From Magallana gigas (lineage: Eukaryota), in NCBI RefSeq assembly GCF_963853765.1, contig NC_088857.1, positions 28,086,001 through 28,150,000 on the forward strand: a stretch of 64,000 nt of DNA. The letters are read 5' to 3'. Positions 1 to 60,971 of this stretch are shown piece after piece (position 1 is the stretch's first letter; each line of letters begins with the position of its first letter). The notes beneath the pieces are model-generated. The model was not told the DNA's origin. It saw nothing but the letters and a program-made list of their open reading frames with translations, and ran no database searches. The position numbers and the translations under genes are program-made.

Positions 1-3000
1 TCTTAGTTGAAAACATTCACAAGAAGTAAAATATATTCCAACTTACCAATTGTGCAGTTCGTTCCATTAAAACCGACAGTACAAGCACATGTGTAATCAT
101 TGATCAGATCTATACAAGTTCCATTGTTCTGACAAGGTTCAGATGCACACTCATCGATATCTGAAATACACAACGTTCAATATATCTATACTACTAAAAT
201 AATGAACACTAATTCATGTGCTTTGTTACCCTCAAAATTGCTTGGAACTTCTTTTATATGTAAGTAAGTTAAAAATATCTGGAATTTGAACCGGAATGAA
301 AATGCGTATGGGGTAGGGAGGGTTTGTAAACAGTCATATTATGAAACATTTTTCAATTTAATTTAAAACAAATAGTAAAATCAAATAATGAAAAAAATAT
401 GCTTAAAATATTTAAAGAGACAGGTGTATTGTGTCTTTTGCATAAAAGGAAAATATAACGCATTGATAGTGCTTACTGATGTCACAATTTGTTCCATTGA
501 ATCCTGCAACACAATCACAGAGGTAGTCGTTGACCAGGTCTGTACAGGTTCCGTTGTTTTGACAAGGCTCTGGATTGCAGTCATCGATATCTACAATTTC
601 AAGTACCAACTGAATGAACAGAATTTTTTTCTCGACAATTCTTATTCTGATGTTTATGATGAAAATGACACCATATTTCACGAATATCAAATGTTCATGA
701 AGTAACACATTGAAGGTTTTCTGGATTCCTAGAAACAATTTCATTATGCAGGTATGGTGATTACTGTTTTCACAATTTGTTCCATTGAATCCTGCATCAC
801 AACTACATTGGTAGTCGTTGACCAGGTCTGTACAGGTTCCGTTGTTTTGACAAGGCTCTGGATTGCAGTCATCGATATCTACAATTTCAAGTACCAGCTG
901 CATGCATGAACAGAATCAAAACGAAATTATCTACAATTTTTAGTCTATGATTTTGATGCATGTCCTATACAGACTAGATTTGTATTTGCTCTTGTTTATC
1001 ATTGGATCAAAGATTCAAAAGTAAAGTATTCTCAATCAACTGCATTGTTTACAATATTATTACAATAACTTGGTTCTTAGTTGAAAACATTCACAAGAAG
1101 TAAAATATATTCCAACTTACCAATTGTGCAGTTCGTTCCATTAAAACCGACAGTACAAGCACATGTGTAATCATTGATCAGATCTATACAAGTTCCATTG
1201 TTCTGACAAGGTTCAGATGCACACTCATCGATATCTGAAATACACAACGTTCAATATATCTATACTACTAAAATAATGAACACTAATTCATGTGCTTTGT
1301 TACCCTCAAAATTGCTTGGAACTTCTTTTATATGTAAGTAAGTTAAAAATATCTGGAATTTGAACCGGAATGAAAATGCGTATGGGGTAGGGAGGGTTTG
1401 TAAACAGTCATATTATGAAACATTTTTCAATTTAATTTAAAACAAATAGTAAAATCAAATAATTAAAAAAATATACTTAAAATATTTAAAGAGACACGTG
1501 TATTGTGTCTTTTGCATAAAAGGAAAATATAACGCATTGATAGTGCTTACTGATGTCACAATTTGTTCCATTGAATCCTGCAACACAATCACAGAGGTAG
1601 TCGTTGACCAGGTCTGTACAGGTTCCGTTGTTTTGACAAGGCTCTGGATTGCAGTCATCGATATCTACAATTTCAAGTACCAACTGAATGAACAGAATTT
1701 TTTTCTCGACAATTCTTATTCTGATGTTTATGATGAAAATGACACCATATTTCACGAATATCAAATGTTCATGAAGTAACACATTGAAGGTTTTCTGGAT
1801 TCCCAGAAACAATTTCATTATGCAGGTATGGTGATTACTGTTTTCACAATTTGTTCCATTGAATCCTGCATCACAACTACATTGGTAGTCGTTGACCAGG
1901 TCTGTACAGGTTCCGTTGTTTTGACAAGGCTCTGGATTGCAGTCATCGATATCTACAATTTCAAGTACCAGCTGCATGCATGAACAGAATCAAAACGAGA
2001 TTATCTACAATTTTTAGTCTATGATTTTGATGCATGTCCTATACAGACTAGATTTGTATTTGCACTTGTTTATCATTGGATCAAAGATTCAAAAGTAAAG
2101 TATTCTCAATCAACTGCATTGTTTACAATATTATTACAATAACTTGGTTCTTAGTTGAAAACATTCACAAGAAGTAAAATATATTCCAACTTACCAATTG
2201 TGCAGTTCGTTCCATTAAAACCGACAGTACAAGCACATGTGTAATCATTGATCAGATCTATACAAGTTCCATTGTTCTGACAAGGTTGAGATGCACACTC
2301 ATCGATATCTAAAATACACAACGTTCAATATATCTATACTACTAAAATAATGAACACTAATTCATGTGCTTTGTTACCCTCAAAATTGCTTGGAACTTTT
2401 TTTTTATATGTAAGTAAGTTAAAAATATCTGGAATTTGAACCGGAATGAAAATGCATATGGGGTAGGGAGGGTTTGTAAACAGTCATATTATGAAACATT
2501 TTTCAATTTAATTTAAAACAAATAGTAAAATCAAATAATTAAAAAAATATACTTAAAATATTTAAAGAGACACGTGTATTGTGTCTTTTGCATAAAAGGA
2601 AAATATAACGCATTGATAGTGCTTACTGATGTCACAATTTGTTCCATTGAATCCTGCAACACAATCACAGAGGTAGTCGTTGACCAGGTCTGTACAGGTT
2701 CCGTTGTTTTGACAAGGCTCTGGATTGCAGTCATCGATATCTACAATTTCAAGTACCAACTGAATGAACAGAATTTTATTCTCGACAATTCTTATTCTGA
2801 TGTTTATGATGAAAATGACACCATATTTCACGAATATCAAATGTTCATGAAGTAACACATTGAAGGTTTTCTGGATTCCCAGAAACAATTTCATTATGCA
2901 GGTATGGTGATTACTGTTTTCACAATTTGTTCCATTGAATCCTGCATCACAACTACATTGGTAGTCGTTGACCAGGTCTGTACAGGTTCCGTTGTTTTGA

Positions 3001-15700: not shown

Positions 15701-18700
15701 TAATATAGAAATTTTTCCGATTGCTTCCAAGAAAGAGAATGGGCTTCTATTTCTTTCAATTCATTATTACATTCGCGGATTCAGAGACCTTTTTCAGGGG
15801 AAGTGGTCCGAAAGATATCTATGTTAAAATGTAAATTTTAAAAAACTTGAACCCCCTCGTCCCCTCCCCTCTTTAGATCCGCGGATGTATTAATATTCGA
15901 GTCAAATTGGTATGATTACTTGTACACAAAAGATTTGGGAAACCTATATTACTCTTTTTAATGTTGTCTATAAATTACCATCAGGGTGTATTGCAGAACG
16001 TATTAAAGTGCACTTAGATAAATTGATAAACCGAGACCAAACTGGGTTCATTTAAGGCATATTTATTGGAGAAAACATTGAGTAATTTATGACATCATCA
16101 ATATACATATCATTAACGAATTCGTGGACTTCTAATGTTTTCAGGTTTTGAAAAGACTTTTGACACAATTTCTTGGGGATTCATTAAGCAAAATTTTATA
16201 ACTTTGGTAATAAGGTTAAAAATGGATTAACACATTTTATAAAGGAATAAAGTCATGTGTTTTACAGAACTGACTAATACCAGGTTACATCCTTAAAGAG
16301 ACTGCAGACAAGATATCCAATAACGTACTATCTTTTTCTCATTTGTGCAGAAATTCTTGGAATAATAATTTGAAATAATAAAGACATAAAAGATCTTAAA
16401 ATTGGTTATGTAGAATATAAGCTGTCTCAATATGTAGACGATGCATCCCTATTTCAAATGGTTCTCCCCTAACGTTTGATGGTTTTCTAAGAGAATTAGA
16501 CTTCTTTAAAAATATATCTGGTCTCAATATTAATTTCCAGAAAACAGAAATGTTATGGATAGATTGCAAAAATTTTTCTCAACATGTTTTTCATTATACC
16601 CGATGGAAGCTTGACAGGAACAACACAACATCTGACTTTCTCGGAATCAAATTTTTAATTAATCTCCAAGAATGTCTTAGCTAAACTATATTTCTAAATA
16701 ATTAGAAATCAATAAAATAACGAATCATTGCAAACATAGAAAATTGAAGTTTTATGTGTACTACATCCAACCCTCCGTCACAGATTAGGATGGCGGGAGG
16801 TTGGTGGATTTCCCTTTTGTCAAGAGTCTGCCCCACCCTTCCGCTTTTAAAAACGACGCTTCGTGCCTGTTAGTTAAGAAAACTTCCTTGATTTCGAATC
16901 TTTTATTTTTTTGCTAAAATTAATTTTACTCTTAAATACGCCACTAAAAATGTTCATGTTAAGAATTCGTTATGCATGTAGTAACTGCAGTAGGTGTTAT
17001 TATCGGTATGTAAAATTTGAACTCGATATTTTGAAATATATTTTTTTTAAAAAATCATTTCATGGGCAGGGAATTTGTGTGCTATCCAAAAATTTTACTT
17101 TTGTGATCCAATGTGCACTTATCTCTGGATATGTGTACACAAAAAAGCCCTAACTATGGATTTTGTTGATTCTGTGTTAATTGGCTGGTTATTTATTGGC
17201 TGAAGCACAAGGAATTAACAGCCCGGTCATATTAATCAAGGGCTTGTCATAAACTAAACGAAATAATTCTATAACCTGGCTGGTTAAGTAAGTGTACTTT
17301 CTTATGCTTATAAAGCAATGACCTCCAGTTTACAAATGAATCTATATAAAATTTATGCATTTTTAAAAATCAGATTTAAAATATAAAAATTTAGGATTTT
17401 TATATTCTCATTAAATTACTTTAAGAACTATTAATATTTTGTGCTTATACGATTCAATATGAATATTAATAAATAAAACATAATTAGATTTAAACGGTCT
17501 GTTGAACTCTTTTCTATGTCAATGCTGCATATAACTGAATATCGAGGAAAATATCATACTGAAATTATTTAGAATTTTTTTTTCTTTCAAATTTAATATA
17601 CAGGGGGTACGTTGGGTTACAGTGCTGGTTAGTGCTATGTACAGTGGCGAACAGTGGGGTTCGGTGCTGGTCAGTGCCTTGTACAATGGCGTACAGTGGG
17701 GTACAGTGCTGGTCATTAGAAATGAACAGTAGGGTACAGTGGGGTACACTAGAAGTCAGTACAAAGTACATAAGATGTCAGACAATGTGAGTGAATTTTC
17801 GGAAAGATCAGTGGATTTTGAATTCAGTAGTGATATAATGACTGAAAGAGGGACAATACAAACTTATTTTATACCAAAAGGAACCAACTTCAAAGGCTTT
17901 TAAAGAATAGTTGCATATGTAACTATCAAATAAATAAACTTTCACTTGAATTTAATTGCTTTGCATTTTTAAATGATTTAGATATTTCATATATGCTGTT
18001 ATGTTGTTTTGTTGCCATGTTGGCGCTAACCTGAATGCTGGTGCCTAAAAAGTTAATGCATGCATAATCAGTTTGAACTTTTATTGACTTACCTTGAGGT
18101 TTCTGACAGATGTAAGAGTAACTAACTGTACAACTTAAATCATTCCACATATGTGTACTCTGCAAAGTATGCACACAGTCTTCATCCCCTCCTGAATTGT
18201 TTGGCTCGCCTGTGTTCCAATTTGAATAAAACACTGGCTGCAAAAATTAAAGTTGTTGAAATGAAAATGTTCATTTATTTCACTACATGAATTATACATC
18301 TTAATATATTACTACATTTACATGTCATATTATATGTCGACAATGGATTTGTTTTAAAATAACTAGAGCTGTAAAGGACATCTATGTCAAAACTAAATGT
18401 ACTAACCGTTGAATCCTTAACCCATACAAAGGTGCCTTCATTGGCTATATCGTTCAGTCCAATCCAGTGGTATGTGTTGGGGCAAAGTTCTTTTCAATAA
18501 AAAAAAAATGATAAACGTAATGATAAACTATTTGGTTACGGCGTTAAAAATATATCATTATTTAATGTTCAAACACTATATCTTCTTGTCAGAGTTTTAT
18601 TTTAAGCAAACCCCAAACTGAAACAATTCTAAAACACGACATTTGTTGGTTGTTCTGCAATACAAAAAACGCAAGCGTGGAGTTTTGAAAAGCAGTACAG

Positions 18701-18821: not shown

Positions 18822-18865
<44 letters not shown>

Positions 18866-19548: not shown

Positions 19549-19616
<68 letters not shown>

Positions 19617-22600
19617 CAAGTCACGTGCGGCAATGTCTTAACTCCGCCCAGCTACGATCTGATTGGACAAAGTCAGTCAAAACATTACGTAAAAACTTTT
19701 CTGGAGTTAACCCCTATTAAACGCTTCTATGTACTTAGTTGTACTTCAAATAATCAAGAATAGTTCAACAAATTCATTTTTTGTATATCTTGATTAGATC
19801 AAGTTAGTGAAAAAATTATTAAAAAGACGTGAGAGCGCTGAATTACAAAACCATCAATTCAGTGAATCAAAATGTTTCCGTACGTTCCAAAAAAGACTGT
19901 GTCCCTGCATTATTGATAGTAACGAGATCACCCCCTAATTGCTGACACGATGCTCTGGCAGTTTGCCAAGGAACAGCATTAGCTATGCAACTGTAGCACT
20001 GGCTGTCATAAACTGACCAAGTTCCCTGGCCACCACATCCGTTTGCTGGGTAAGAAAAAAAAGAAAAAATGCAAACGATCTACAAGCCAATTATTTTCAA
20101 TTATATTTGTTTGTTTAATTCTTATAAATATGGTAAGAGCAAGAATTTGGGCAGCTGCATAAGTAACAAGAGGCCCATGGGGCCACATCGCTCACCTGAG
20201 CAACAATGGGCGTCCAAAGATATTGTGCCATATGGCCCTCAGTAGAATAACAAAAAAATAAATATTGTAAAGTATTCGAATTTTACACTTATTTTTGCAT
20301 ACACGTAATCTTTGACATTGTACCTTCATGAAACACTGTTTTTAAACAGAATAAGAAAATCCTACGCAAGATATAGAACTAAATATTTGGTAGGGGTACA
20401 CTGTTTTATAACTTCTAATTCCCTGTATTTTCGTTCTGCCTCCCTCCCCTACTTAATAAAGCGATCAAAATATATGAGAGCATATAGGTACATTTTCTTC
20501 CTCAACTACTTACTAGTTATTGTATTTTTTTAAAAATATAATAGTTATTGTGTTTTATCAAAAAAATCCTACTTGTATATATGTGAAGAAGAAAATTGCA
20601 CCGCAATGCGTTTAATTTCTCAAATTAAAAATATTCAACAATTTAATTTGTCTTCTCCATTATAATAAAATGACTGTTGTGTACCTCGCGTTGACTTTTT
20701 TAACTTTACTCACACTTGATTGCTGAATACACTGGAATGAAAAATGGTGTCACGTACATGTTAAAGAGCTATAAAAATCAATGTTACCGTATTGACAGGC
20801 ACATCACTCTAATTTACAATGGCCCACCCATTATTTTCATTTTTATTCAAAAATAACAACTGGCTACAAACGAGGATAATTTTCCGCTGGAATATTTTCT
20901 TAGGAATAGCGATAATTCTTTTATCCCCGCAACAGAAATGTGTCAGAACTATGGAAACTGTTTAAACGATGTCGTTTTTATTTACTCACATTTCACATTA
21001 TTTATTGTATAAAAAATCAATGTTACCGTATTGACAGGCACATCACTCTAATTTACAATGGCCCACCCATTATTTTCATTTTTATTCAAAAATAACAACT
21101 GGCTACAAACGAGGATAATTTTCCGCTGGAATATTTTCTTAGGAATAGCGATAATTCTTTTATCCCCGCAACAGAAATGTGTCAGAACTATGGAAACTGT
21201 TTAAACGATGTCGTTTTTATTTACTCACATTTCACATTATTTATTGTATAAAGAGAGTAGTTATATACAGTTATATAGTAGTTATATACAGCATATCATT
21301 CTTTAATTTTTTGTGTTCAAGTATTTAACATACTCTAATTCATATAGAATTTCTAATGATCAACCAAAATTTCAGCGTCAATCGTAGAATTATAAGCAAG
21401 ATGAGCTCAAAATATTTTGCTAGGTTTGAGTCGTATTTTGTTCACATGAGTTTATTACATTCAGCTTAAGATTTTTAACTTGGCATTTCCTATTCGGCAT
21501 TTTAAAATGGAAAAAAATGAATGGCCTCAGATCTGAGTACAAACATAAAATTGTGAGCAAATCTCTGTATTTTGCTTATAATTCGAAGCTTAACACTCAA
21601 ATATGGTAAGTAAATAGAAATTGTAAACAATTAAACACAAGAAACATGCTCTATAACAAATAAAGAACACAATCTATTTTTCGAAATGAATCATATACAT
21701 GTATACACCTACATATTTCCGTCAGCGATATTTAACTCTATTTAAACTGAATGAACTCGAGAAAATGCCGAGCATCTCAACAAAACATATTGCATTATTC
21801 TACCATTACGCAAAAGATGATATTGAATGACCGATAGCCTGAATGAATTGCATTTTAGTTCTTTCTTAAGGTTGCTTAATTTGCGCAGGTAAACAGTAAA
21901 CTGTTTGATTTACCGAGGTCTCTGTTTGATTTGATACGTAAAAATCAGGAAATACAAGCGACAGTTCCCAGGTTAACGCAAAGCATAAATTAAAACGAAA
22001 ATCACAACAAGCTAACACCACCGTCATATGTGAAAGCTGTCAACGCATTGAAATATTTAGCCTCAATTTACTTCACAAAATCGGCACCAATGTATTTTGC
22101 ATGTTTCAAAGATTCCCTTCGTACACGAACTTTTGCACAACAAACAAATTCATCATTGTCAGATCGACCCGTTTATCATGTAGTGTCATGGCGGCTTTAA
22201 ACAAAGAACCTCGTTTTAGAATTATGGAATACCCGGGCCCGGGCAAAATAAAAGCCGGGCAGATCGGCAATCGTCAATTCCAATTAAGCATTATTTTGCA
22301 GCAATATTTACAGCGAACACAAATATACTGGTCAGTAAATACCTTGAAATTTTAATGAGATTGGCAGATTAATAACTTTTGTTTTGCCCTGACCCGGTCA
22401 TGCCTACCCATTTTTCCAAGACTCATGGATGCTATAAACTGCTTGAAACACGCCTTTTCTTTCTTATTATTTTCGTAATAACAAAGATTTGAAACAGAAT
22501 TAGCCCATAATATTTGCAATTTTATTTTCCTTCCCATAAGGATTATTCATGCTAAATTACGTTGAATTTGCCTCAATAGCTCTTGAGAAGAAGATTTTTT

Positions 22601-25600
22601 AAAATGCACCCCCAGTTTTAGAGAAGAAGTTAAAAATGTGAAAAGTTTACAGACGGACAGACAGACGGACGGACAGACGGACGACGGACAAAATGTGATC
22701 AGAATAGCTTTCAGAGTAGCTTTCAGCTCAGGTGAGCTAAAAATTAAGTGTAAATACCAAATGAAGCATTTCATTACCATAAAACATACTTCTATACAAA
22801 ACATAACATAAACATTTTATAATTCATTAAAAAACATATAAGATAAACGAAAACCACACTGTTGCTATAGTCTTTTCTTATTATAATTATATCTAAATAG
22901 TGGTAGATCCAGTATACTGGGACATAGAAGATAAAACTTACATTGTAAATCTGCCAGAGCTTCAATGCCAAAAATGTACTTGTTTGGTGCTAGAATGGAA
23001 TAAAATATACAAGTAACGTATAAGAATCATACGTATAGGTGTAATAAATCATACATTTGACATAAGAGGTAATTGTTTAAAATACCCTTTGAAATGTTAC
23101 AATTTTTATTAATAAAAATATATAAATAAGCTGCTTGTTGACAGAAATTCATTAAAATTAACCGGTATTAATACAAGTATTTTTTAGTACCCTGGGGTTT
23201 AAAATAAAACATACAAACAAGCAGAATTTCATATTAATATAGTTTCATTCCTCCTAAATGTATCTTCTTTCATGTGCAATAAAAAATCAAAGGTTATCTT
23301 TATCAAATTGCATATACAAGATGAATATACATGTACATATTAACGAACAATAGTACATAATTAGTGAACATAAAAAGTTACAAACATTTTATAATTTATC
23401 ATCAGTTCTGTTATAATTATCATTATAGAACTTTAAGATGAGAAGTTTTTACCTAAAATGATGAAGTGAATACTTATGATTGCAGTTATTTACTGATGCA
23501 AATTATCAGACAGCTTAGTAAAGAGATAGATTTATTAAAATATTTTATATTTTATTTAATTTGATGCAAAAAACATCTTTTAATGTATACTGAATGTGAT
23601 AGACTGGATAAAAAGATCTAGTAAACATTAAAGCATCACATCATCACCTTCCCGCTAATCCGCTTAAATGCCTGACGTATCCTTTAAAAAATGGTTTTTT
23701 TTTTTATAAAATATATGTGTATGCACCACATGTGTATGCAAATTAAAAGAGAGCAAATATTCAATTTCCTTGAACTACTACAGAAACTATAGAAATTTAG
23801 TAACAACATCCAAATTATTCACTGTCAAAATATGCCTGTTTTTATTAAGTAGTAAATATACATACATCGGACGGACAAATAAAGCACAATAATATATCAG
23901 ATGAGATACTTAAGATAGGGAAAACATATGATATGTATAGATTACCTGTAATATTAACTGTAATGCATCTCGATGGTGAGGATTGTCTACAACAATCAAA
24001 ATATTTAAATTTGATGTCATAAATTTGAACATAGAACAGTAAAAAAGTTTCATGTTAGACGCTAGACATATTTGATAGACTGTTGATAAATAATAAATCA
24101 TTAATTGAACTTTCCTTAATGTTCTAGTAAAAAATACTGCAGAGAAACAAATCTATTGTTATTATATGTATTTAATAAAAAATATATACATATTTTTACA
24201 GCAAATATAGCCCTTTTTAGCGACTATTATAAAGCCAAATGACTTCAAAATAGTCTTAACGCTCAAAGAAATGAGCAGATATCTACATAGTTATTTTATT
24301 TCTCTTAATTTGATAGGGAATAGGAAGTTACTTCAAAATATAGAGGACAATAAGGTGAGCCAAACTGTTCTTGTAGCTCCAAAGTAAGAAATCCAATCTT
24401 GGATTTCAAAACTACTAGGACGGTTAATATAATATGAAATCTTATTTATTTTCTCGATGCGTCAATCATAATTGTTATATTTTTTCATGGAAATGCCATT
24501 TTCTTTGGATCTCACGAAAAAATTAGGAAGCCATTTGTAATTTGAAGAGAATTGTGGGTCCAAGTCTGACGACAGATATGTGAACGGCAACACTATCTTT
24601 GCTAGCCGAGTGTTCGATTCCTTATTTTTCATCGCAAGAGACTGGCTAGCGGCGAAGATGAGGAAGCAGTAGTAGCAAAAATGATATCGCCCAAGTTCTG
24701 TCTGAGAGCATGTAGTTGTAGCGCTTTGCACTGCGGGCCTGCGTTCACTATTATTTGCTTTGTATGATCCTAATAAACATAACACCACTTGACTTCAACA
24801 AAGTTAAGGCAAAAAAATCGAAATCCACCATACTAAAGATACATCAATATCATAGTTATTCCATACTAGAAAAATAACTGCAAAGAAATGTGCTCAAATA
24901 CACAGATGCATAAAAAAATGTACATTCAAAAGAATATGATTTTTCCCTCGTTGAAAAGAACGAGCATACAACTCAAAAATTGATTTACATGGTTAAATGA
25001 TAGTTATACCCTTTAGTTTTGGTTACATGTATAATTACCATTTACCTTTTATTCGTCTCTGCTGAAAAGCACACTACATGTGTTCCGATTACATTACTGA
25101 CAACAGACTCTAGTGACATGATGACCTGATACTCGTCTACAACAGGTTGTGAGATGGCTGATATAGTAAATGGAAGAGGTGACATAACATGGAATTCTGT
25201 CACTCTGAAATAAGTTTATTACAGAAATATCATGAAAATAACTATAATGAATGCAAAAGCTAGAAAAAGTATTAAATATTTAATAAACATTTTCATAATC
25301 AATAATCTTCAATTTGAACGATTAGAATATCTTTATTTTTATATTAAAAACCTACTGACCCAAAAATTGCCACAACGCGCATCAAATTAAAATTTCATGT
25401 AATGATTTTTGAAACACTATTAAATGAAGATATTTATAATAAAAGATATTGTATATTGTTTTATAAATATATGTAAATATTGAAGTTTTTACTTACAGAT
25501 GAAATTGCAAAATTTTAAATAAAGCCAAATTTGCTTCATAAAATTTGAAACAAAGTGATGTCGGTATTTAAATTAATGATTTAACGAGAGTGTTTTTAAA

Positions 25601-32401: not shown

Positions 32402-32440
32402 CTGAAATAATTTGTAATCAGTACATATTATAATTTACAC

Positions 32441-34900: not shown

Positions 34901-34903
34901 AAT

Positions 34904-36004
34904 TTATTGTGTAATTGGGCGGAATGATCTCTGTGGGAATCTAGGGCGGAATTGCTGTGATGCGGGCTTAACTGGGGGGTATTGTTTACCCGTACTGTTA
35001 TTCTGGGAATATCTACAATTCAAAGAAGGATGTGAACCATTACACTTGACACAAATATGCAAGAACCTACAGTTTTGTTTTTCACATACTCCCTGAAAAT
35101 TGTAAGAATTGTAAGCATTTAAACTGCTTTGTAGGGGTTGGAATGTTATTTTGGACTACCGGCTGCATGTAAAACAGCCATAATTCTGCATCAACTGAAC
35201 CCCAGCTGAGACTGGAATCAATTGATTTTTTCAACCTAAATTGAACATCGTATTCCCTCCAGTTACAAGAATTTGGTGAACGCTCTGCGCCTTTCCTAAT
35301 TGTAGCCATGTATCGAAATAAATGAACAGCTTGCGAAGAATGCTTGGCACAATAAATCGAAGCAAAAATTAGAAAAGCATCTGTCCATTGTGAAATGGAC
35401 ACTATTGTTTCATCTTTGTATTTTGGTTTGACCTGAATCGCCCCATCATGATATACAATATGATGCTGAATATCTGATGCAGGTTCTTTCATTAACAACT
35501 TGTTAAGTGCAATATAATCCATATCTTTTCTTTCAATGCTATGGGTACATGAGCCCCAAGTGACGATACTACACTATGGAAAGGTGTGGGGTTTTCAATG
35601 TCGAACAAACAATCTGTACCTGTATTGGTGCTAGATCCTGCTACTGAAGGCTCGACCGTCTGATCCGATGGGGCCCTTGCCCGGTCTAGAACAGGTTGTA
35701 CAGTTGGTTGTACTACAGGGACTGGCAAACTTTGGCTTCTATCATATATTCTACCTGTAGACTCGGTAACTGCAACTGTGGAAGGACTGCTGGAGGACGA
35801 AGTCACATTTGGCATCCGTGTAGACGCCCGGGAGGCTACAACCGCTCCCCTCGTGGGAGGTCTGGCATAAGGGCTCTTGGACTTCGACGTCCTAACTTTG
35901 CTAGCTCTCAACATCTCTTCAACTTTGGATGCACTGGATATTTTTTCTAAGATGAATTTGTGCCACCTATCAACTTTGGATTGAGCAGGAAAAGGAAGTA
36001 GCAA
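34904..36004 (-). pseudogene. Ngaro gag-like ORF, frameshifted
   Basis: ORFs 35492..36004 and 35082..35522 overlap in different frames at KEKIW/DYIAL; WREYDVQFRLK motif; a Cys/His knuckle (CEKQNCRFLHICVKCNGSHPSLNC) lies in another frame after a second shift near 35100. Confidence 0.75.
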
Positions 36005-38499: not shown

Positions 38500-39290
38500 A
38501 AAACAGAGGCTAGGGCGTAGGGTAGCAGAAGGAACAGGAAAGAAGGTTCAAAGAGCAAAAACCAATTACAATGTCCAACAGTAATTACGGCTTTACCCCT
38601 GTGGTTAAGAATCAAAAGTAAGCAAGCATCACTAATAATTTCCAGTTTAATGGGACAACTGAGGAGGATTGGATATCAGAAAAAAAAATTGAACAGCAGC
38701 AAAATTTGAATTCTTATTTCATGTGCTTTTCACAAAGTGAGGCATCCAGTACTGGTAGGTTTCTCAATTATTCAGGATTGGATCAATGGGTCAGATGCAG
38801 GGTTCTTCAGGATCTAGACCACCATCAGGGACAAATAATAAACAGTCTTTTGATCTACTAGTACTTGACTCATTTCTCATCAGCGTTTTGCAACTAAAAA
38901 TGTTTCTAACTCAAATGAAAAGTAGTGACTCACAAGGGGCAAATTCTCCAGTAAACAATATCTTTTAATTCCATGAACAAAAAAGAAAAATTAGCCCTTT
39001 AGACCACATACTATATCAGGCTTAAGCGTGATGCCATGACAACCAGGAATAATGGGTAATCAGGGCTTTATGGGAAAACAAGGCATGATGGGAAAGCAAG
39101 GAATGATAGGAAATCAAGAGTTTATTCGACAAAAGATTATGATGGGATAACCTCCTCCTAAAAAACAAGGACAATTTGATACATCGATGAACAGCATGAA
39201 TTTCTGCCAGAAACAGAGATCCAGCAATGCATTAGAATATAAAATTAACATCAATGCCATCTCAGATGTTTTAAATCAAAATTAGAGGTA
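38500..39290 (+). pseudogene. Decayed coding-like relic with G-x-M-G-x-Q repeats
   Basis: Four 18-bp units at 39046-39117 (GIMGNQ GFMGKQ GMMGKQ GMIGNQ) inside Q/G/S-rich reading fragments broken by stops; parent gene not recognised. Confidence 0.35.
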
Positions 39291-41052
39291 CACTAACGTA
39301 CATCATATTTGTACAATTATTTTGGGAATTGGCTTTTGATTTTGTTATTCAATTGAATTCATGTTGATTATATAATGCCAAATAGAGGTATATATTTTTA
39401 CGGAGCAGTGTGATATTGAAAGGTATTGTTTCTTTAGTTACTTCATTTTAGTCATAAGAAAATTAAATTGTTGATTTCCAATTTTATTTTATTAATATAT
39501 GTAGTCATGAATCAGGAAATTATACATGTTATTCAGTGACATATTTAGCATTGTACAACAATGGAAGCACTTGTCATAGTATCAATAAGGATTTTTTCAT
39601 AGCACTATGAGACGATTTAAGGCTTATTGACAGCAAAGTATCGTGTGCATGCAATATATGAACAAGTTTAATGTCATTTGTTTAGTCTTCATGATTTTTC
39701 AATGTGTACAACATTAAAGAAAGACTAGTTTTAATGAATTTCCCGTCATCTCTGCACTCAATCTTGATTTATGCACTGATATGGGTCGTTGGTCTAAGAG
39801 TTTATGTATTTTAATTTCCAATCCTTCCGATACAATGTTCATTGTTTGAAATTAGGTAACTCCTAAAACATATTCAATTCGTGTACATTTCAAATTGGAA
39901 TATTTACTAAAAATGATTTTATCTTAGCTATGTTAATAAAAGTGCAATTATTTTTAAAAACTTTTGTCCCATCTACAAAATTTGCCCCCCCCCCCCTGAA
40001 AAAATTAAGAAGGCCGTTTGATCAACAAATTAATCATAAACTTCACATGAAAATCGAAATGATATTTTTAGCTATAAACTTTTATCTAGGAACAATTTTT
40101 GAAAAATATATTCGTTTTTAAACTTAGATATTTATATACTTATACCGAGTATATGTTAAGATGATTACTATAATTTAAGAATGATATAGTCATTTTGCTA
40201 GTTCGACAAAACTTGTAGGTGAATAAATGATTTAGGAACAGAAAGGTGAAGTACGACAGGACTTTTTGTGCAACGTTTATAACATAATAAGACATAAACA
40301 TATGTGTCAATCATGTAATTAAAGTTACAAATGAACTTTTTGTTATTAACAAAGTACGATTCACAATAAAAAAAAAACTATGGAAATGTTATTTTTTGTG
40401 ATTCCTGGTTTACAATAGAGTCCGAAGGTTGCTCTTTTATCTGAAACTGTAAAGAAAAAAGATATTTATACAACTATTATATTTTATTCTTATCAAATTT
40501 TATTAAAATGAAGTTTAGATTAAATAAAAGACGTGTACTATAGTATGTTCACAGAAAGAATAATTGTTTATACAAACTTTAAATTTCATACAATCTGTAA
40601 AAAGAAAATAAGCATTAACATCCGTGTATAAGAGAAACAGTCCTTTTTAAAAAAAATGCAATTTTCTGAGAATCAAATTGTTGTTATTTGAATTATAAAT
40701 TGATAAGAACATATAAAAAAAAACACAATTCAAATGAAAATATTAAACATGTAAAACACAAAAATCAAAAACATGTAAAGCTCATCACATTCATTCATCT
40801 TTCACTCAAAAGATTAACTACAAAATTGAAAAAATTCAACGACAAAATTCAATACGTCATTAAGAAATAAAGGTAACATGTACGTAGCTGCAGCACAATA
40901 AACAATTTTAAGTTGTGAAAAGATTAATTATACATAAAATTAAACATAGTTCATCGTAATAAAATCAGACATTATTGTCAATTTTATGCACATTTTTTAT
41001 ACGTAAATAGAGGAACTGATTCATTAAATAAGTGTTTTAAGTTCATACTTAC

Positions 41053-41063: not shown

Positions 41064-44000
41064 CTGTAAAAAAGTAACGTTTTTAAAGAAGGAGATAAAA
41101 TCAATAATTAAAAGGAAAGAAAGAGGGAGAAAAGTACCCTATACCAATAGTAAAAATTGTTCGAAAACTTTATTATCGACATTTACAGTTTATAAACCCA
41201 CAGTAAAACATTCTTATCTTATCAAAAGATAAAAGAGGTTCTTACATGCAGGCCACTGTGTAGTTGTTAAACTCATGACACCTGTATCCAGGGGAACACA
41301 CGCTCTGGGAATTCATAATGGAACATCCGTCAGTGGAATTGGTGATAATAACTGAATAAATGGTGTGACAATCAACATACTGAGAGGATTTGTTTTATTT
41401 AGACAAGAAGTCATTCAAATAAAGCAGCAACACAATTGTATTTTCATCAAGCGGTTAAAAATTCAAGTTTTGAGGGGAAAAAAACCGATAAAATACTATA
41501 CAGTAATTATTTGGGGCAAGTCTAAGTTGAATACATTTCTTATGCCAATATTTTTTAAAGAAATGTTCTGAAAAACATCAATCTTGCAAACTGCAACTTC
41601 AACAAACAACAACCGTCTACTTAATAAACGACATATATTGTTCAACATGGAATAACCAATTACAATTCAACTTTACCAAGACTGAGATTTTGAATTTAAG
41701 GTTGTGTTATTTTGAAAAAAAAGTATGCAGGTTTTACTATTCTCACCGGTGCCAGCAGACGAATTGAATGATGCTGATGTTACGTTCACAACCTCGCCGG
41801 AGTAGTTGACAAAGGCTAGACCGTTCACAAGCTTATAAACAGTGTCCACTACCTGAACCTTGGATACAGGATCATCCGGAATAATGAGATCAAAGTCAAC
41901 AATAAGACTTCCCTTCCTTTACAAAAAATATTTAAGTGATTATAGTTATAAAAAAAAGATTAAGCGCTTGTTATTCATGTTTTCTGGATTTTGATGAGCC
42001 CGGAAATTGGTATAATAAATGCTACTTTATAAAATCTGAAAAAATAACATTTTCGAATATATTCATTTTTAGCAAAAAAGAAATTAAACACCCCAATTCC
42101 ATCATCAAAAAGTGACGCAAGCGAAAAAAGAACTACCACAATCCATTTATTTGAGACACCTTACTACACCGAGACTCATACGTCACAATGTGGCGGTTTT
42201 AAATGTTCTGTTATATTGTTTGGATCATTTGATTTGGTATCATATTATCATACCCAGTGGTTAATTATAAAGTAACGAGTTTGTTAACGGTAGATCAAAA
42301 GTTTGAATCCGCCTTTAGATTTTGTTCATATTTACTTAATTGAATTTCTGAAAATCATTATATTTCATCCAAAATTGCACATTTTTTCGCTTCTTGTGCA
42401 TCATGCTATCTATCATTAATCAACTAATTTACTGCTGGTTTAAGAATCTATTTCAATGTGTAAAGAGCCATCTTAAGTGTTGAACATTGAGCTACAATGT
42501 GTTCGCTGAATCGTGAACTACCTCTGTAACATACTTAAAGGGCGTCAAATAGAATTATATCAATTATTGCAATACACAATAAAGTTAACAGTGCACTAAC
42601 AATTTATTAACATAATCAAGGTTTGAAAAAAATTACATATTTAATTTAACGCCACTTATATTTGTTTGGATGGCAAAAATGCAAAATCCAAAAAAAATGG
42701 CTTGAAGTAAAACACACGTATTTCTAGTCGAGTAAAACAAAATATGGTTGTTTAAATATAACCATAAAAAATAATAAATGCATGTGTATTAAAAATTAGA
42801 CTTAAACAAGCATAACAAACCAAAAATATCACAATCATGTTAAATGCATACTTTATTTCGAGTTAGATGTTTTCAAATTCAAGACAAGATTTTACTGTAC
42901 TTAATACGTAACGCAAGCACACTTTTACCTTTCTTGTTGAATTCTATTTGTTTTATGTTTGAAATGCATAAGATACACTAATGCAGTTTATTTCACTTAA
43001 TATTCATTTTTTTTGTTATTGTTCATATCTCGTTTAACCACATGTTGTACGCTTTCCCTGAGCAAAGCTTCGAAGCGCAAAAAAGCATTGAATTTATGAT
43101 AGCTTCGCAGAATATACGTTACTTAAAACAATTTTATATCATACAGCAGACCACGATCTGGCAGCTGGTATTTATAATGAAATTCTTAACTTAAAAAACC
43201 TACGATACGATCAAAATGATGGTATAGAACAATTCAACATGAAATATACGTACCGTAGACTGTGTATGATCACTGTAGATCCTGGTATCGTGGAATACAT
43301 TTCTGTTAACTGCAAATATATAGATATATTTACAGTTTTCAGTGTCTTTGTCTGTGATACCACTACGAATCCATTTTGACATTTATTATTATGAAAACAT
43401 CAAATACGGTCGGTCGGGATCAAACCAACCCTAAAGCTCTTAATTCAGGCTTTATTAGTTTTGATCACCCTGACCGTGTTTGATCACCCCATTTTATACA
43501 AAGAATGATTCCTAAAGTAGACAGAATGTAGGTAGACAGACAGAGATATATTTATAACGATTTTATACTTACGGCAATATATACTTTACTTTTAACGGTG
43601 TTGTAATCAGTGCTTGAAGACAAATCTTCTGATATTGTTACGTCTAGTTTTAATTCAATTGTGAATTTCGTTAAATATGATTCTAAAAAATAAACATAAT
43701 TCCAGTTTATCATAATATTAATGAACCTGTTTTAATATACTCTGTAAAATGAGTTTTATTTCTATGAAAATGACAAAAAGCAAATCTACCAGTTAGACTA
43801 AAAATATCATAAAACTACATTAAGTTCGAATCTCAGTGTTGAATATTTCTTTATCTCAATACCATACAAATATTTTTGTATTTGTTATGAGATTATGTAG
43901 CTGAACTTCGAGTGTTGTCAACACTAAAGAATTTTACATAAAATCTGGCGGCATATACTTCAAGATAATAGATGCCAAGTACCCTCAATAAGATACAATC

Positions 44001-47000
44001 TAACTTTATATTAAATAAAGCTATTTTGAATATCACGATGGATCATTAAGTTTTTGTTGCATAAAATAAAAGGATATCATATTTTGGATAAAATTCATTT
44101 TATACCTGTAGAGCAGGTAGTTCCATTGAATTCCAAAGGACACTGACACTGGAATCTATTGGTCAAATCAATACAGGTTCCGTTGTTATTACACGGGAAG
44201 GAAGCGCACAGATCGACGTCTAAAGTAAATCAAGTAAAGTAACTCCTGTGTTTCAGGAGCGTAAAAGCAGGGCAAAAAGATACCATCAAATTAAAATATC
44301 TAGTATGTAGTATTTCGTATGCAGGTCTTAATAGTAAAAACATTTCATAAAACATGTTTTGTTGTACTTAGCATTATACATGTAATTGTTCAATTTTTTA
44401 ATTTTCTGATTTAGTTATCATAGTCTGGATATTTATATTGATGTCGTCAATTAATTTGCCTCAGACTGTCTCTGGTAACTGGTCTCTAAAAATGAAGTTT
44501 ATTTATCGACAATTACAATTTACAAATATGAACATACCAATGCAATTGTGTTTTAGAAAAAAATTGAAAGGTATGCAACATCACAACATCTGCAGTAAAT
44601 TGTCAGAGAAAGTTTTGGTATTGCATATTTGCATCGAATATGTTTGAACATAGATTAGTAAATCCCAATGTTTTAGTGTGCTGTATATCACAAGGTTTTT
44701 TGTAGATATGAGATCTGTATCTATACGTACTAAATGTCAACCACTATTTACCAATCTGAATCTATACCATATTCTTAAGAGTTCAAGTGATAAATATCTT
44801 CTTTTGTTAAAGTCAATCGTAGGCATATAAAAAGTTAAAATAGTTCAAAGTATCAGAGTTAACGATATATTTTTTGAACATTAGATATGTATAATTTGTA
44901 TTAATCAACATTATTTATATTGCAATTGAACTTTATGATCTAATATGTTCATCCAGTCAGACGGAAAACTATAATGAAATTCAATTTAGACATACAAATA
45001 ACTCTCTTTTTTCAATTAGATCCGTTTGTACAGTTAAAATTAAAAACATGTGAATAATTAACATTTTTGTAAAAACATTAGCATTGTCAAAAATTAAATT
45101 ATATCCTAATTTACCAAATTCACAGTCTGTTCCATTAAACCCGTATGTACAGTTACAATTGTAACCATTGATCAGATCTATACAAGTTCCGTTGTTCTGA
45201 CAAGGTTCAGATGCACACTCATCCATATCTATTGTGATAAACGTTAAATATTCATTATTTCGAACAAAATTTTGGGTAAGGTTTCATTTGTGTAAATAAA
45301 AAGGGACACTCCTGTATGCTGAAATAAGATTATTTATCAACTAATGACTTTAGAACCCACAAACGTGCTTATTAAAAAGAAAAGAGAAAAAAAAATTATC
45401 AACAGATAGAGAAATAAAACCAATCATTTGACTTAACATAACTATTACCATTCGCACGAATTGTTTGCTTAAATCATATGTTGTATATATTAGATAATTA
45501 AAATCTTTAGAAAAAATTCAAAAATATAAACTGTCAACGAAATAACGAGTTTAAACTTTTTGTACCAAACCAAGCTTTCCTTACAAAGCCATGTAATCGA
45601 CCTACTTAAAAAAAACATGTGAAGAACTACATATCTAAATTTACCAATTTCACAGTTCGTTCCATTAAACCCATCTGTACAGTTACATTGGTAACCATTG
45701 ATCAGATCTGTACAAGTTCCGTTGTTCTGACAAGGTTGGGATGCACACTCATCAGTATCTATAGTAAAGGAGAGTACTTTATGTTTATCACTTAAGGCTT
45801 ACAGTATGTTGACACATCTACTTGTTTATATTCTTAAAAAAAAGCACACGTTTCCATTAATAGTACTTACTGTTTTCACAATTTGTTCCATTGAATCCCA
45901 CAACACAACTACATTGATAGTCGTTGACCAGGTCTGTACAGGTTCCATTGTTTTGACAAGGTAATGGTTGACACTCATCGATATCTAAAATTTCAAGAAC
46001 TTATGAAAGGACAGAAACAAAAAGAAATTATCTTTAATTTTGTGTCTATGTTTTAATGTTTGCCCTATAGACAATACATTTGTATTCATCTTTGTATCAC
46101 TTGAATAAAAAGTTAAAAGTTAAGCATTTAACCAACTAAATATTCTCTGAATGTGTACAAGAAATTTGATTCTTTGGTTAAAAGATTAACATAATGGAAG
46201 ACATATTTCAACTTACAGTTTGTGCAGTTCATTCCATTTAAAGACATCTCTATTGGGTCTTTGTATAAAACGAAACTATATTGCATTTATAGTGCTTACT
46301 GTTTTCACAATTTGTTCCATTGAATCCTGCAACACAATCACATTGGTAGTCGTTGATCAAGTCTGTACAGGTTCCATTGTTTTGACAAGGCTCTGGATTG
46401 CAGTCATCGATCTCTAGAATTAAAATAAATTATCAAAAATAAAAAGACTAAAAACATTCCTCGTTTTAATTATTGGATGTAGAAGTCCGTTTTTTACACA
46501 GTATCAATATTTCAATTGGAACACAAATAACAAAATATACTGACAAATCATACATCTCACATCATTCGAAACATTTAAAATAATATTCAAAATTTCATCA
46601 TTGCATTTTTCACCTTTTAATCTGAAAAAAATACTGCATTAATAGTTATTACCGTTTTCACAGTTTGTTCCATTAAATCCAGGAACACAATCACACTTGT
46701 AATCAGTGACCATGTCTGTACAGGTTCCGTTATTTTGACAAGGATTCGGAAGACAGTCATTGATATCTGTTCATAACCAAATGCAATTTATTGTAAAAAA
46801 GAAAAAAATGTTGTTGTTTATTGCCAACGAGTTTTAATTGTATTGAAAATGGATGAACACTAAAGTCATACTAAGAAAATAATAAAATATCTGATGAAGA
46901 AAAAAGCTTTTAATCTTTACATCTGTTCCAAACTAAGCATTTGCATTGCTTACTGTTATCACAATTTGTTTCATTGAATCCTGCAACACAATCACAGCGG

Positions 47001-58765: not shown

Positions 58766-60971
58766 TCAATAGATACTTTCGCAGAAGGTGAAAATAACAT
58801 GTTGCAAAACATGTCAGACCAACACGTATATGTGTTCATCGTTGCATCTATCCCTTTGCTCATTAGTCAGGATAAATAAAATGAATATTTTAATACGCAT
58901 ATGTGATAGTAGAGTAATATGTCTATGTGTATTTATTCGTTTTGTATTTTCTATTTTTCGTTTTGTTCAATAGAATCTTAAAATTTTATCAGTCAAAGTT
59001 TTACTGCGCAAGTAAATTGAGTTCTTCCTATCTGTAATTTCATTGGCTAATAATATTAACCAATTATTTTGAAGCTAGGTGTATAAATAAGTTACCTATA
59101 TTGAAGCTTAAGTTTGTTTAAGCGTGGTTTATTTCTTAAGAATATTGTTAATTCATATTCATCCATTATCAACTTTTATATTTTACTACAGCTTTGTACG
59201 TAATTATCATGTCTAAAATATTGCAACTGTATCTGCTATCAAGCACTACAAATTGATTACTTATGTAATGGGCAGATGGCCGGGATAAATGCCCCCCTAG
59301 CCATCGGTCCAGTCACGTGACCTCTTATCTCGGATGGTTCTTGGACAGCTACAGCATCAGCTATCCACCACCATCCCCGCCACTCACCTTTATCTTACTT
59401 TGCCATGGTAATGCCAAAAAGAGCCGGCTCAGTCAATTTATTTGCCCTAATATTTCATATTTTTCCCCATTAAGTATTCATTTGCTAATTGCAATATAAT
59501 TACTTGTATCATTTTAATTGCTTGTACAATTCAGTCCGTCTCAGTATTCTCGTACTGACGAAGTTCTACCTCGTAGATCTTCCAACCTTTGTCACATGCC
59601 CTGCAGGGTTCAACAACTATCGTTGTGGCGATGTCACACACATCGGGTAGCTTCTACCACGTGGATGCTTCAACCCAGCAGGTTCTTCTTTCTTAAGTGA
59701 GTGACTGAGCCAGTTTTTACTCCAGTATGTGTTGATAAGCTTGTATATATATTATTTGTAGATTTGTAGATGTATAAAATGTTTCTTTCTCAAACTATAT
59801 CTTTTTATTCTTGAGAAATAAAATTCTAATTAAGTTAGAGCAGTATACCGTTTCAAGAAACCATCCGGTTGATATATGTGGCATCTTATGGTATGTAAAT
59901 TTTATATTAACTTATGTTTTACTTATCGGTGTAAATGCTTAGTCTCTGGTTTTATTTTAATTGCCTTGTCAATACAAAAGTGTATTTTTGTAATTAAAGT
60001 TACAATACTTGGAATGTGTCTGTAAAGTTCAAATGATAGCTTTCTTTACAGTACGCGCTGATTTTTTATGAAACGTATAATGTATTTGTGGTAGCTTATA
60101 GCTAATGTATTTTCTTTCATTTTGTCAGTTTTCTCATATAATGTATTATTTTGTAGGTCAATGATTCTATATTCAAAATATAAATAAAGTCATCAGATAC
60201 ACAGTACACTATCTTCATTTTCCTTGACTGCTCGGTTACACATATATGTAGTTATTAATTACCTCCTAAATCCACGGTGATACATCTTGATTCTGAGGAT
60301 ATCCTGCAAAATATAGAAATTAAATAATTAAACAGTCAATTTGTTTTTTTTTTCCTCACACAAAACAAAGAAACAAACAGAAAAGACCACATTATTCAAG
60401 ACACTGATTATCGTGGTTGATGAGTGATAGCTGAGGAAAACATTGCTTGCATTGAAAAGAGAACATTTAATATCAATAAAGATATATTAAGTATAATCGA
60501 GCAATTGTATGAAAAGCCAAGTGAATAATTTACCAAAATTTTGCAGCAGACCGAAAAATGAAACTTTAAAGAAATAGTTACCGAAGAGTTAAAATCTGTT
60601 TGTAAAGAGAAGGAAATTCAATATTCTTAATTCATGAAAAAAAATAGACAATTTAGGAGGAACGAAAACAACATAATATTTAAACATAATTATATACATG
60701 TATTGAGCTGTAAAAAAAAAACCCAGAAAAAAGTAGACAGGCGGGGAGATTTCAGAAAATTAATGACCGTATTCAAAATAAGAAATAATAAATAGTATCA
60801 TAAATTACTTAACTTTCATTTGTCTCTGCTGAAAAACACATTACATATGTTCCATTGAGATCCTCGGTATTGGAGTCCAATGACATTGTAACCTCATAAT
60901 CATTTGCCCCACCTTGCACGATGTCCGACATTGTAAAATTGAGAGGCGACATAATATGGAATTGTGTTACT
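41053..60971 (-). CDS. Gene 2: paralog of gene 1; N-terminal domain (partial) + 26 EGF + SEA + EGF-like; 5' exons and C-terminus not resolved
   Basis: Exons 60813-60971, 60263-60303, 26 EGF exons (55333-55446 down to 44106-44219), 43573-43682, 43254-43309, 41747-41916, 41246-41351, 41053-41063; phases compatible throughout, except that one donor is TT instead of GT. Confidence 0.8.
41246..41351 (-). CDS. Post-SEA EGF-like cysteine exon
   Basis: Phase 1->2, [34 protein letters not shown]; donor GTAAGA. Confidence 0.75.
41747..43682 (-). CDS. SEA domain exons of gene 2
   Basis: 43573-43682 ([36 protein letters not shown]), 43254-43309 ([19 protein letters not shown]), 41747-41916 ([32 protein letters not shown]...); phases 1->0->2->1; GSLIVDF resembles the SEA GS[V/I]VV motif. 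Confidence 0.8.
44106..55446 (-). CDS. Gene 2 EGF exon array (26 exons)
   Basis: Phase 1-1 exons start at 55333, 55000, 54433, 53996 (111 bp), 52914, 52545, 52243, 51882, 51298, 51068, 50767, 50413, 49823, 49236, 49006, 48705, 48349, 47763, 47184, 46954, 46653, 46300, 45871, 45645, 45115, 44106; 114 bp unless noted, with AG/GT boundaries checked. Confidence 0.92.
46217..46240 (-). pseudogene. Relic 3' end of a type-A EGF exon
   Basis: cttac-agtttgtgcagttcattccatt matches the donor end of gene 1 type-A exons; the rest of the exon is deleted. Confidence 0.7.
47533..47744. mobile_element. TA-flanked MITE, copy 1 of 4
   Basis: TACTGTAAAC...GTTTACAGTA, ~212 bp; further copies at 48120-48330, 49593-49804 and 50184-50394, all at the homologous intron position. 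Confidence 0.85.
51479..51689. mobile_element. TA-flanked MITE, second family
   Basis: TACTGTGGTTT...AAACCACAGTA, 211 bp, internal ttttcgtgg/ccacgaaaa motifs. Confidence 0.85.
53612..53661 (+). repeat. (AG)n microsatellite
   Basis: Uninterrupted AG run of ~25 units. Confidence 0.95.
55600..55676 (-). pseudogene. Degenerate truncated EGF pseudo-exon
   Basis: GCAG|ATATTGATGATCGC..., [26 protein letters not shown]; Cys1 lost, homology ends after ~25 codons, no donor, in-frame TAA follows. Confidence 0.75.
56307..58607 (+). mobile_element. HINE/Helentron-type element carrying a Cg170-like satellite array
   Basis: Same termini as the 20165 element; internal tandem monomers of ~166 bp (gaacccc at 57874, 58040, 58210), more degenerate toward the 5' side; (GACG/GACA)n at ~58510-58557. 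Confidence 0.85.
59264..59883 (+). mobile_element. Possible solo LTR
   Basis: TG...CA ends, 620 bp, AATAAA at 59817, flanks actta/tctta (4 of 5 TSD match); no internal ORFs. Confidence 0.4.
60263..60303 (-). CDS. Gene 2 short exon linking N-terminal domain to EGF array
   Basis: 41 bp, phase 2->1, [13 protein letters not shown]; acceptor TTTTGCAG, donor GTAATT. Confidence 0.8.
60813..60971 (-). CDS. Gene 2 N-terminal domain exon with non-canonical donor
   Basis: [52 protein letters not shown], 159 bp like its gene 1 counterpart; intron begins TTAAGT. Confidence 0.8.

Follow-up and report, generated by a model that had tools for sequence, protein, structure and literature searches.

The stretch analysed here, 64,000 nucleotides of the Magallana gigas genome (contig NC_088857.1, positions 28,086,001 to 28,150,000; "the window" below), holds a tandem pair of paralogous genes, gene 1 and gene 2, whose predicted proteins begin with the same N-terminal region, the head. 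Only gene 1 has a C-type lectin domain with EPN and WND motifs, and the stalks of epidermal growth factor-like (EGF) domains that follow differ in length. We think it rather probable that the pair encodes very large secreted modular glycoproteins, in the order head, lectin (in gene 1), rod of calcium-binding EGF domains, SEA-like module, Cys-rich module and stop. Both genes are coded on the minus strand throughout. Both genes extend past the window edges, and because they do, flanks of 60 kb on the left and 40 kb on the right were added to the window. Exons were searched singly, and natural database proteins (P0005, P0014 and others) were used in place of the spliced head.

Paralogy is evident from the heads. 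The 159-bp exons at 25046-25204 (gene 1) and 60813-60971 (gene 2) align without gaps at 70% DNA identity and 57% protein identity, and their translations end in CFSAETNK and CFSAETNE, respectively. Across 350 residues the two heads are 66% identical. A profile of head exon 5, built from seven paralogs in this genome (profile A1), retrieved 640 protein clusters at E ≤ 0.001, with a best E of 1e-35. An identity of 66% over 350 residues, together with this many clusters for the profile of one head exon, indicates that the likeness is not due to chance. The original prediction, which was made from the sequence of the window, had proposed same-strand tandem paralogs with a common N-terminal head, and the aligned 159-bp exons and the head identity bear it out.

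Head and lectin of gene 1

The head of gene 1, about 345 residues, precedes two small exons, the lectin and the EGF array. Exon 1 (29833-29937, minus strand, as are all exons below) has the start codon, a signal peptide and the SHFRGG mature N-terminus in an open frame, with the donor CAG/gtgcgt, and it aligns to L026, a public RNA contig from a relative. The signal peptide is probably cut before S-H, where the -3/-1 rule fits in all aligned homologues. A histidine-brace reading of the conserved N-terminal His, like that of lytic polysaccharide monooxygenases, was dropped because a cut before Ser would make His residue 2.

Exon 2 (28034-28239) lies in AG/GT context and carries the remainder of head domain 1 (CxxGCTG...C...W); it aligns to L026 and to residues 36-105 of its product, P0005. 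The end of domain 1 and the linker to domain 2 are on exon 3 (27271-27452), where the family-invariant W110 is replaced by L. Exon 4 (26129-26232) holds the DFDGDD..CRF..EC motif of the cadherin-like domain 2, with D167, D169, D171, C175, R176 and E183 all kept, and exon 5 (25755-26017), the gene 1 exon on which profile A1 is built, reads ALQIEDF...SSVPLQF across the end of domain 2 and the start of domain 3. The body of the Ig-like domain 3 is exon 6 (25046-25204), for which acceptor and donor were both read.

Two small exons absent from the first reading follow. Exon 7 (23946-23986, 41 nucleotides) begins with Arg, supplies the last strand of domain 3, in which an RCIxV strand is matched in homologues, and changes the intron phase from 2 to 1. 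Exon 8 (22942-22989, 48 nucleotides) encodes a 16-residue linker.

RNA reads mapped to gene 1 join these exons to the lectin. Three joints, 23986 to 25046, 22989 to 23946 and 20045 to 22942, have GT..AG ends on the minus strand. All three were seen in two poly(A) RNA runs (1-2 and 6-10 reads), and in run X3, recorded as RNA, they fall within one contig of 1318 nucleotides that spans head exon 6 and lectin exon 1. All three recur in run X1, which is labelled as RNA by guess only, and the joint of exon 7 to exon 6, which confirms the boundary at 25046, was thus read in four runs. The original prediction had named a lack of splicing between head exons and lectin as a point on which it could fail; the RNA confirms this splicing, with exon 6 joined to exon 7, exon 7 to exon 8 and exon 8 to lectin exon 1.

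The RNA runs and the assembly differ at eight positions in the 159 bp of exon 6 (25080-25165). Six of the eight are replacement changes (H>Y, S>N, I>T, V>G, V>I, I>M), whereas a single silent change was seen in exon 7 and another in lectin exon 1. The exon 6 differences may be variation of the head between individuals, with the reservation that the numbers are small and that cross-mapping of paralogs is possible.

A C-type lectin domain ahead of the EGF domains, as originally read from the EPN and WND motifs, is present on three consecutive exons, each with a Pfam match. Lectin_C (PF00059) is covered from profile position 3 to 107: lectin exon 1 (19884-20045), the piece found with exon 6 in the X3 contig, matches positions 3-34 at E 5e-5; lectin exon 2 (18407-18489), which contains WIGLND and whose boundaries are predicted from splice context, matches 38-67 at E 3e-4; and lectin exon 3 (18093-18237) matches 68-107 at E 4.7e-8. 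The third exon has the EPN motif, an acidic E-D-C stretch and the WND motif, read as GEPNN, GGDEDC and MWND. These residues suggest a Ca2+-dependent lectin of the mannose/GlcNAc type, the sugar specificity being taken from the motif. The donor of lectin exon 3 (CAAG/gtaagt) is in phase 1 and is compatible with the EGF exons.

EGF arrays built of cassette exons

The stalks are arrays in which each EGF domain is one exon. Exactly 37 such exons of gene 1 lie in the window (47-13150), arranged in about 12 units of ~1074 bp with three EGF domains each (counted by regular expression; Pfam EGF E 1.5e-10), and 26 were found in gene 2 (44106-55446), partly as about 3 units of ~2.06 kb with five EGF domains each. 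Both counts agree with those first given. Gene 1 continues beyond the left edge of the window, and its whole array has 66 EGF exons. These form about 21 units of ~1074 bp, which by BLAST of one unit share 96-99.8% identity over exons and introns alike. Tandem Repeats Finder, whose longest period is 500, was blind to the arrays, and the one-unit BLAST was used instead.

The 92 EGF exons of the two genes are uniform. In every case an AG lies 11 nucleotides ahead of C1 and a GT 7 nucleotides past C6, with phase 1 at both ends. A length of 114 nucleotides is found in 65 of the 66 exons of gene 1 and in 25 of the 26 of gene 2 (the other has 111), or 90 of 92 overall. Since the exons are symmetrical in phase 1, the gain or loss of an exon keeps the reading frame.

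All 92 exons fit the six-Cys pattern. The features of a calcium-binding EGF domain are present, namely six Cys, an N-terminal D-x-D-D/E-C (here DIDDC or DIDEC) and N-x-Y/F before C4 (here NDY), and PF00008 matches at E about 1e-10. The EGF_CA model gives 23.7 bits on single exons, below its threshold of 27. The EGF domains carry a candidate O-fucose site (C2-xxxx-T-C3), and every third EGF domain of gene 1 also has a candidate O-glucose site (C1-x-S-x-P-C2).

Gene 2

Gene 2 has one main head exon inside the window, exon 6 (60813-60971), which encodes head domain 3. Exon 7 (60263-60303, 41 nucleotides, also beginning with Arg) matches positions 1109-1154 of L026, which has exon 6 spliced on one side of it and an EGF exon on the other; in gene 2 its end is in phase 1 and agrees with the first EGF exon. 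Exons 1 to 5 are at about 87.7, 81.2, 78.4, 66.9 and 66.5 kb in window-extended coordinates. The original assignment of a gene 2 head within the window therefore holds for exon 6, with exon 7 missed, whereas exons 1 (with SHFRGG) to 5 are found 3-24 kb outside the window on its right side.

In L026, which is 85-87% identical to gene 2 in nucleotides, exons 1-7 are spliced on to an EGF exon, and this supports an architecture without a lectin for gene 2. The earlier description of gene 2 as going straight from head to EGF domains was right as to the lectin and is corrected as to "straight", exon 7 standing between the two.

The donor of gene 2 exon 6 raises the question of whether the gene is intact. 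The first intron bases (60812-60811) are TT and not GT, the donor reading GAAAG/ttaagt where gene 1 has AAAAG/gtaaat. Gene 2 could accordingly be a decaying duplicate, or it could make only a secreted head of ~340 residues: read-through of exon 6 ends in ...ETNES and a stop, and the M. gigas protein XP_019928364.1 (P0012) ends in the identical ETNES. We consider this somewhat unlikely. Exon 7, the 26 EGF exons and the tail exons are all open, with AG/GT ends in phase; both L026 and an older M. gigas model (P0166) carry exon 6 on to exon 7; and the TT could reflect an allele or a fault in the assembly. The protein P0012 matches this genome at 62% at best, which hints at strong divergence or at presence/absence variation in the cluster.

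The 3' ends and the question of a membrane anchor

Beyond the EGF arrays, ~8 kb of tail sequence is collinear between the paralogs, gene 1 ending in the same SEA-like and Cys-rich modules as gene 2. The peaks of conservation correspond to the last EGF exon, two SEA-like exons, a Cys-rich exon and one short segment. In gene 2 the first SEA-like exon (approximately 43558-43687) is a conservation peak against the gene 1 copy with an open frame. The second (approximately 41728-41931) is 90.5% identical to the gene 1 copy, with windows up to 100%, and contains RKGSLIVDF, which resembles the G/SVVV self-cleavage site. The Cys-rich module (approximately 41207-41360, exon and flank) has a TAA right past its putative donor. 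A putative last exon (40545-40619), predicted from a 92% conserved peak against gene 1, consists of an acceptor (...ttacag), (I)LYEI and a stop; its gene 1 counterpart reads (I)LYEL and a stop, and poly(A) signals lie ~40-60 nucleotides past the stop of gene 2. These signals are near 40500 in gene 2, and those of gene 1 are near -13350 in window-extended coordinates, to the left of the window.

The SEA-like module has the name of a family to which it is not linked by any profile. No Pfam match to SEA (PF01390) was obtained for either exon even at E 10, nor was a PDB sequence matched, in searches with single exons. Among ESM feature clusters the three closest are SEA in every case, with scores of only 0.81-0.83, and the GSLIV motif is present. 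The assignment to SEA is unproven, and we keep the module as SEA-like. The Cys-rich module has no Pfam match either, so that its earlier description as "EGF-like" is not shown. What survives of the base first described, SEA followed by an EGF-like module, is a conserved tail module in both genes; the two domain names are not backed by Pfam, nor SEA by PDB. Among 160-odd collected proteins none had a match to the SEA-like and Cys-rich tail.

The proteins had been called receptor-like, with a base like that of membrane mucins. The order of EGF repeats, SEA-like module with a G-S-hydrophobic motif and small Cys-rich module does resemble the SEA-EGF ends of membrane mucins and of the secreted IMPG1. 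If a transmembrane and cytoplasmic exon followed the SEA-like and Cys-rich modules, as in MUC3, MUC12, MUC13 and MUC17, the products would be type I membrane receptors; the order of modules recalls the membrane-proximal part of those mucins, and the 3' end is known here from sequence comparison. Several observations make such receptors very unlikely. Between the Cys-rich exon and a plus-strand frame that converges on the genes there is one conserved segment only, and splicing to it brings a stop five codons after the junction in both copies. Read-through of the Cys-rich donor stops at once, the frame ending 1-6 codons past the Cys-rich exon in both copies. Comparison of the paralogs found no transmembrane exon and no conserved hydrophobic open frame after the Cys-rich exon in either copy, and the gene bodies contain no exons of Ser/Thr/Pro-rich (PTS) repeats of the kind found in transmembrane mucins. 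Because of the early stop and the lack of a transmembrane exon, the receptor and membrane-mucin readings are not supported, and both proteins are probably secreted and free of a membrane anchor.

The convergent frame was seen at both genes. A plus-strand frame of 277 residues, rich in Met, Gln, Gly and Asn, converges on the 3' end of gene 1 to the left of the window, where it is intact (L011:4310-5140), and a stop-broken copy of it lies beside the 3' end of gene 2 (38600-39300). Since copies flank both 3' ends, the tandem duplication took along the last exon of a neighbouring gene.

The head family and its relation to Sib proteins

The head belongs to a widespread family. Named members retrieved with the exon 5 profile belong to oysters, clams, mussels, a crinoid, Nematostella and a killifish; each is either uncharacterised or takes its name from another domain. 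Wherever a member is full-length, its head directly follows the signal peptide, and the stalks behind it vary: EGF with SRCR, sushi, ZP, NIDO-VWD-EGF, Ig/HYR-like repeats and CARDB/RHS. The head thus spans cnidarians to fish on many different stalks, which indicates one head on swappable stalks. This reverses the original suggestion of swappable heads, since the head stays constant from one animal to another and the stalk is exchanged.

Six proteins may serve as examples of the family outside the gene pair: C. virginica LOC111105368, M. gigas K1PJG4, a Mercenaria protein named "CUB and sushi 3-like", a Mya protein named "SVEP1-like", Nematostella LOC116611783 and Anneissia LOC117108507. Like gene 1 and gene 2 they have an N-terminal head of ~300-350 residues right after the signal peptide, with SHFRG..W, INSSP, DxDGDxVRCRW and YAVAxQIEDF..SSVPLQF; they differ in their stalks (SRCR, sushi, ZP, NIDO-VWD, Ig/HYR-like or CARDB/RHS). 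A C-type lectin combined with 26-66 EGF domains and a SEA-like terminus was not encountered among the proteins scanned.

An alignment of 27 heads has 18 invariant columns and contains the motif CTDYS..EDW in addition to the four above. Gene 1 keeps 17 of the 18, the exception being W110. Gene 2 also scores 17 of 18 by script, missing P141; as its exon 3 contains NQSPVSS, we read this miss as an overlap artefact.

At least seven loci in the genome carry the head. A third paralog lies 0.56 Mb away on the same chromosome (C5:28702843-28713948, minus strand), and four further head loci are at C5:26.30 Mb, C5:30.66 Mb, C9:26.53 Mb and C10:16.66 Mb. By the coordinates of protein searches in this genome, one of the four is collinear with an EGF and SRCR protein and three with an Ig-repeat protein. 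The M. gigas protein K1PJG4, which is named DMBT1, matches a paralog in this genome at 86-96%.

The original prediction had noted a likeness of the head to the N-terminus of the Dictyostelium Sib proteins (integrin beta-like A-E). At the level of the domain family this is upheld. The domain PF24907 (SIBA-E_N, "Integrin beta-like protein A-E, N-terminal") is recognised in 14 of the 27 aligned homologues, always in the N-terminal ~120 residues and at a best E of 1.1e-7, so that the first head domain is in the Pfam family of the Sib N-terminus, in register at the mature N-terminus. Two full-length relatives exceed the threshold of 28.1 bits (P0001 with 39 bits and P0094 with 29.3 bits), and in one homologue PF24908, which is the second Ig-like domain of Sib, gives a marginal match (E 0.013). 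The two genes themselves do not take part in these matches. Pfam searches with single head exons gave no meaningful match, and PF24907 did not match the head exons of the window nor, at E ≤ 1, the closest spliced relative, P0005. Because the matches are to homologues and not to the exons of these genes or to P0005, the link of the two genes to Sib is transitive. Word-based protein searches from residues 1-160 of P0094 and 1640-1960 of P0001 returned bivalve and echinoderm proteins only and no Dictyostelium Sib, and the head profile found nothing below E 0.1 among PDB sequences.

The features that define Sib proteins are a different matter. According to PMC3279395, what defines a Sib protein is the possession of a VWA domain, a glycine-rich membrane anchor and a tail that binds talin; the same paper, citing Cornillon et al. 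2006, gives SibA and SibC a part in the adhesion of cells to substrates and particles. Exon scans gave no significant match to VWA, and the RNA takes the gene 1 head through exons 7 and 8 into the lectin, L026 joining a gene-2-like head to an EGF exon. By sequence comparison neither a glycine-rich transmembrane domain nor a talin-binding tail was found after the Cys-rich exon in either paralog. The oyster lectin, EGF rod and SEA-like module are unrelated to Sib. Gene 1 and gene 2 are, on these grounds, not members of the Sib family, the N-terminal module being all that they have in common with it. By analogy the head may bind in a Sib-like way.

The literature searched for the HFRGG head and for PF24907 or SIBA-E_N held nothing relevant. 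The proposal of an uncharacterised family is sound as to function and needs amendment in one respect, the first head domain being already a Pfam family. The two genes present a new domain combination within a widespread family of unassigned function.

Predicted structure of the head

The 293-residue product of L026, P0005, stands in for the spliced head in the structural work. Its AlphaFold2 (AF2) model, built with an alignment of 27 sequences, has a predicted local distance difference test score (pLDDT) of 83 and a predicted template modelling score (pTM) of 0.81. Domain 3 was modelled from a Saccostrea homologue with 21 sequences (pLDDT 90). From these models the head consists of three beta-sandwich domains: a Sib-N-type domain 1, a cadherin-like domain 2 and an Ig-like domain 3.

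Domain 1 (P0005 residues 20-127) is a beta sandwich with generic structural matches only. Domain 2 (residues 136-250) superposes on dozens of cadherin extracellular (EC) domains at Z 6-7 and a root mean square deviation of 2.2-3.0 over ~100 residues, with a Foldseek E of 5e-5; a Z below 8 was taken as likeness of fold and not as family membership. Domain 3 has as its best match a streptococcal Siglec-type adhesin domain (Z 9.5), followed in a flat list by cadherins and I-set domains.

Domain 2 carries the DxDGD motif. The modelled cadherin-like fold, the invariant DxDGD and the N-S-S-P linker suggest that it is probably stabilised by Ca2+. The likeness extends to the cadherin-like modules of bacterial adhesins such as SraP, and an acidic DxDGD and an N-x-S-P stand near the interdomain linker of the head. 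The oyster head differs from cadherins in having a single such domain, with disulfide-forming Cys and without a repeat array. Pfam Cadherin did not match P0005 or nine other heads, and a classical-cadherin anchor was not found.

For the unit formed by domains 1 and 2, matches among predicted structures include proteins of rotifers, echinoderms (with ZP) and molluscs (with EGF), with template modelling (TM) scores of 0.72-0.80 over ~260 residues when Bacteroidota are included. The Bacteroidota proteins, which have CHU_C or Por_Secre_tail ends, match the unit by predicted fold only (TM 0.72-0.75).

Interpretation

The arrangement of modules suggests how such proteins might act. Each would be a soluble, or matrix- or mucus-bound, multivalent binder, in which the protein head, and in gene 1 also the glycan-binding lectin, would be held at the far end of a long, Ca2+-stiffened, Notch-like EGF stalk. 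Such a design would suit adhesion or opsonin-like recognition outside the cell. The length of the stalk probably shifts by unequal exchange between the near-identical exon-intron units of the arrays. The anatomy of the genes, their paralogy, the splicing of head to lectin and the assignment of folds are established by the data above. The ligands and the biological role in this proposal, like Ca2+ binding and secretion, are put forward on the strength of the module order and the motifs.

Matrix proteins typically contain long rods of calcium-binding EGF domains, and this speaks for another role. Gene 1 and gene 2 could encode structural components of matrix, mucus or shell, in which the rod is the working part, as in fibrillin, and the head and lectin serve assembly. 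The head is also found on coat- and mucus-forming proteins of the ZP, NIDO-VWD and SRCR kinds, and no anchor was found in either gene. A distal lectin with EPN and WND motifs and the amino-acid-changing differences in exon 6 fit recognition better, although they are compatible with a matrix role as well, and we regard a primarily structural function as unlikely.

Several points weigh against secreted proteins of the full length proposed. RNA depth on the exons of gene 1 is low (0.5-7) in the sampled runs. The junction of lectin and EGF array is predicted from intron phase and sequence, as is the number of EGF exons, and 1074-bp units that are 99.8% identical are prone to assembly error. The 3' ends were read by comparing the two copies, and a transmembrane exon may have been missed or may be used alternatively. 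The SEA label lacks a profile match. The TT at the exon 6 donor in the assembly means that gene 2 may not make the full-length protein. Finally, no binding or localisation data were found for any member of the head family.

A broader hypothesis joins the distribution of the head to its possible function. The three-domain head would be an ancient particle- or surface-binding module of amoebae (in Sib), Bacteroidota and animals from cnidarians to fish, which bivalves deploy on many stalks for soluble or matrix-bound recognition; at this locus it would be combined with a mannose-type lectin, the stalk length would be set by the copy number of cassette exons, and individuals would differ in residues of the head. 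We regard this hypothesis, taken as a whole, as speculative and quite unlikely to hold in full.

Should the head prove to bind ligands, it would represent a widespread extracellular recognition module that links the Sib proteins of amoeba adhesion and phagocytosis to secreted proteins of animals. The locus offers a natural comparison, in that the same head is found with or without a lectin and on a rod of 66 or of 26 units, and its 92 EGF exons illustrate clearly how symmetrical cassette exons can tune the length of a protein. For oyster biology, the genes add a candidate family to the expanded repertoire of lectin and EGF proteins that is thought to serve immunity and mucosal defence. Their products should be sought in secretions, mucus, haemolymph or matrix, and not be treated as signalling receptors.

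Transposons and repeats around the genes

A DIRS/Ngaro-type retroelement lies between the two genes on the minus strand (31800-36150). It encodes a reverse transcriptase (33376-34785), a tyrosine recombinase (32444-33415) and a GDSL/SGNH hydrolase (31806-32417), and its repeated ends are at 35973-36146 and 31130-31303. Intron 8 of gene 1 contains repeats (20168-22743) that are hundreds of times deeper in RNA than the flanking exons and have numerous joints within them; these repeats represent a transcribed family of transposons and do not belong to gene 1. In gene 2, intron 7 holds tandem units of ~165 bp with a repeated open frame (56970-58370), probably a satellite or a repeat derived from a short interspersed element (SINE). 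Intron 1 of gene 2 contains an element of the long interspersed (LINE) type, with long reverse-transcriptase-like frames, at 82000-86000 in window-extended coordinates (L013, L010).

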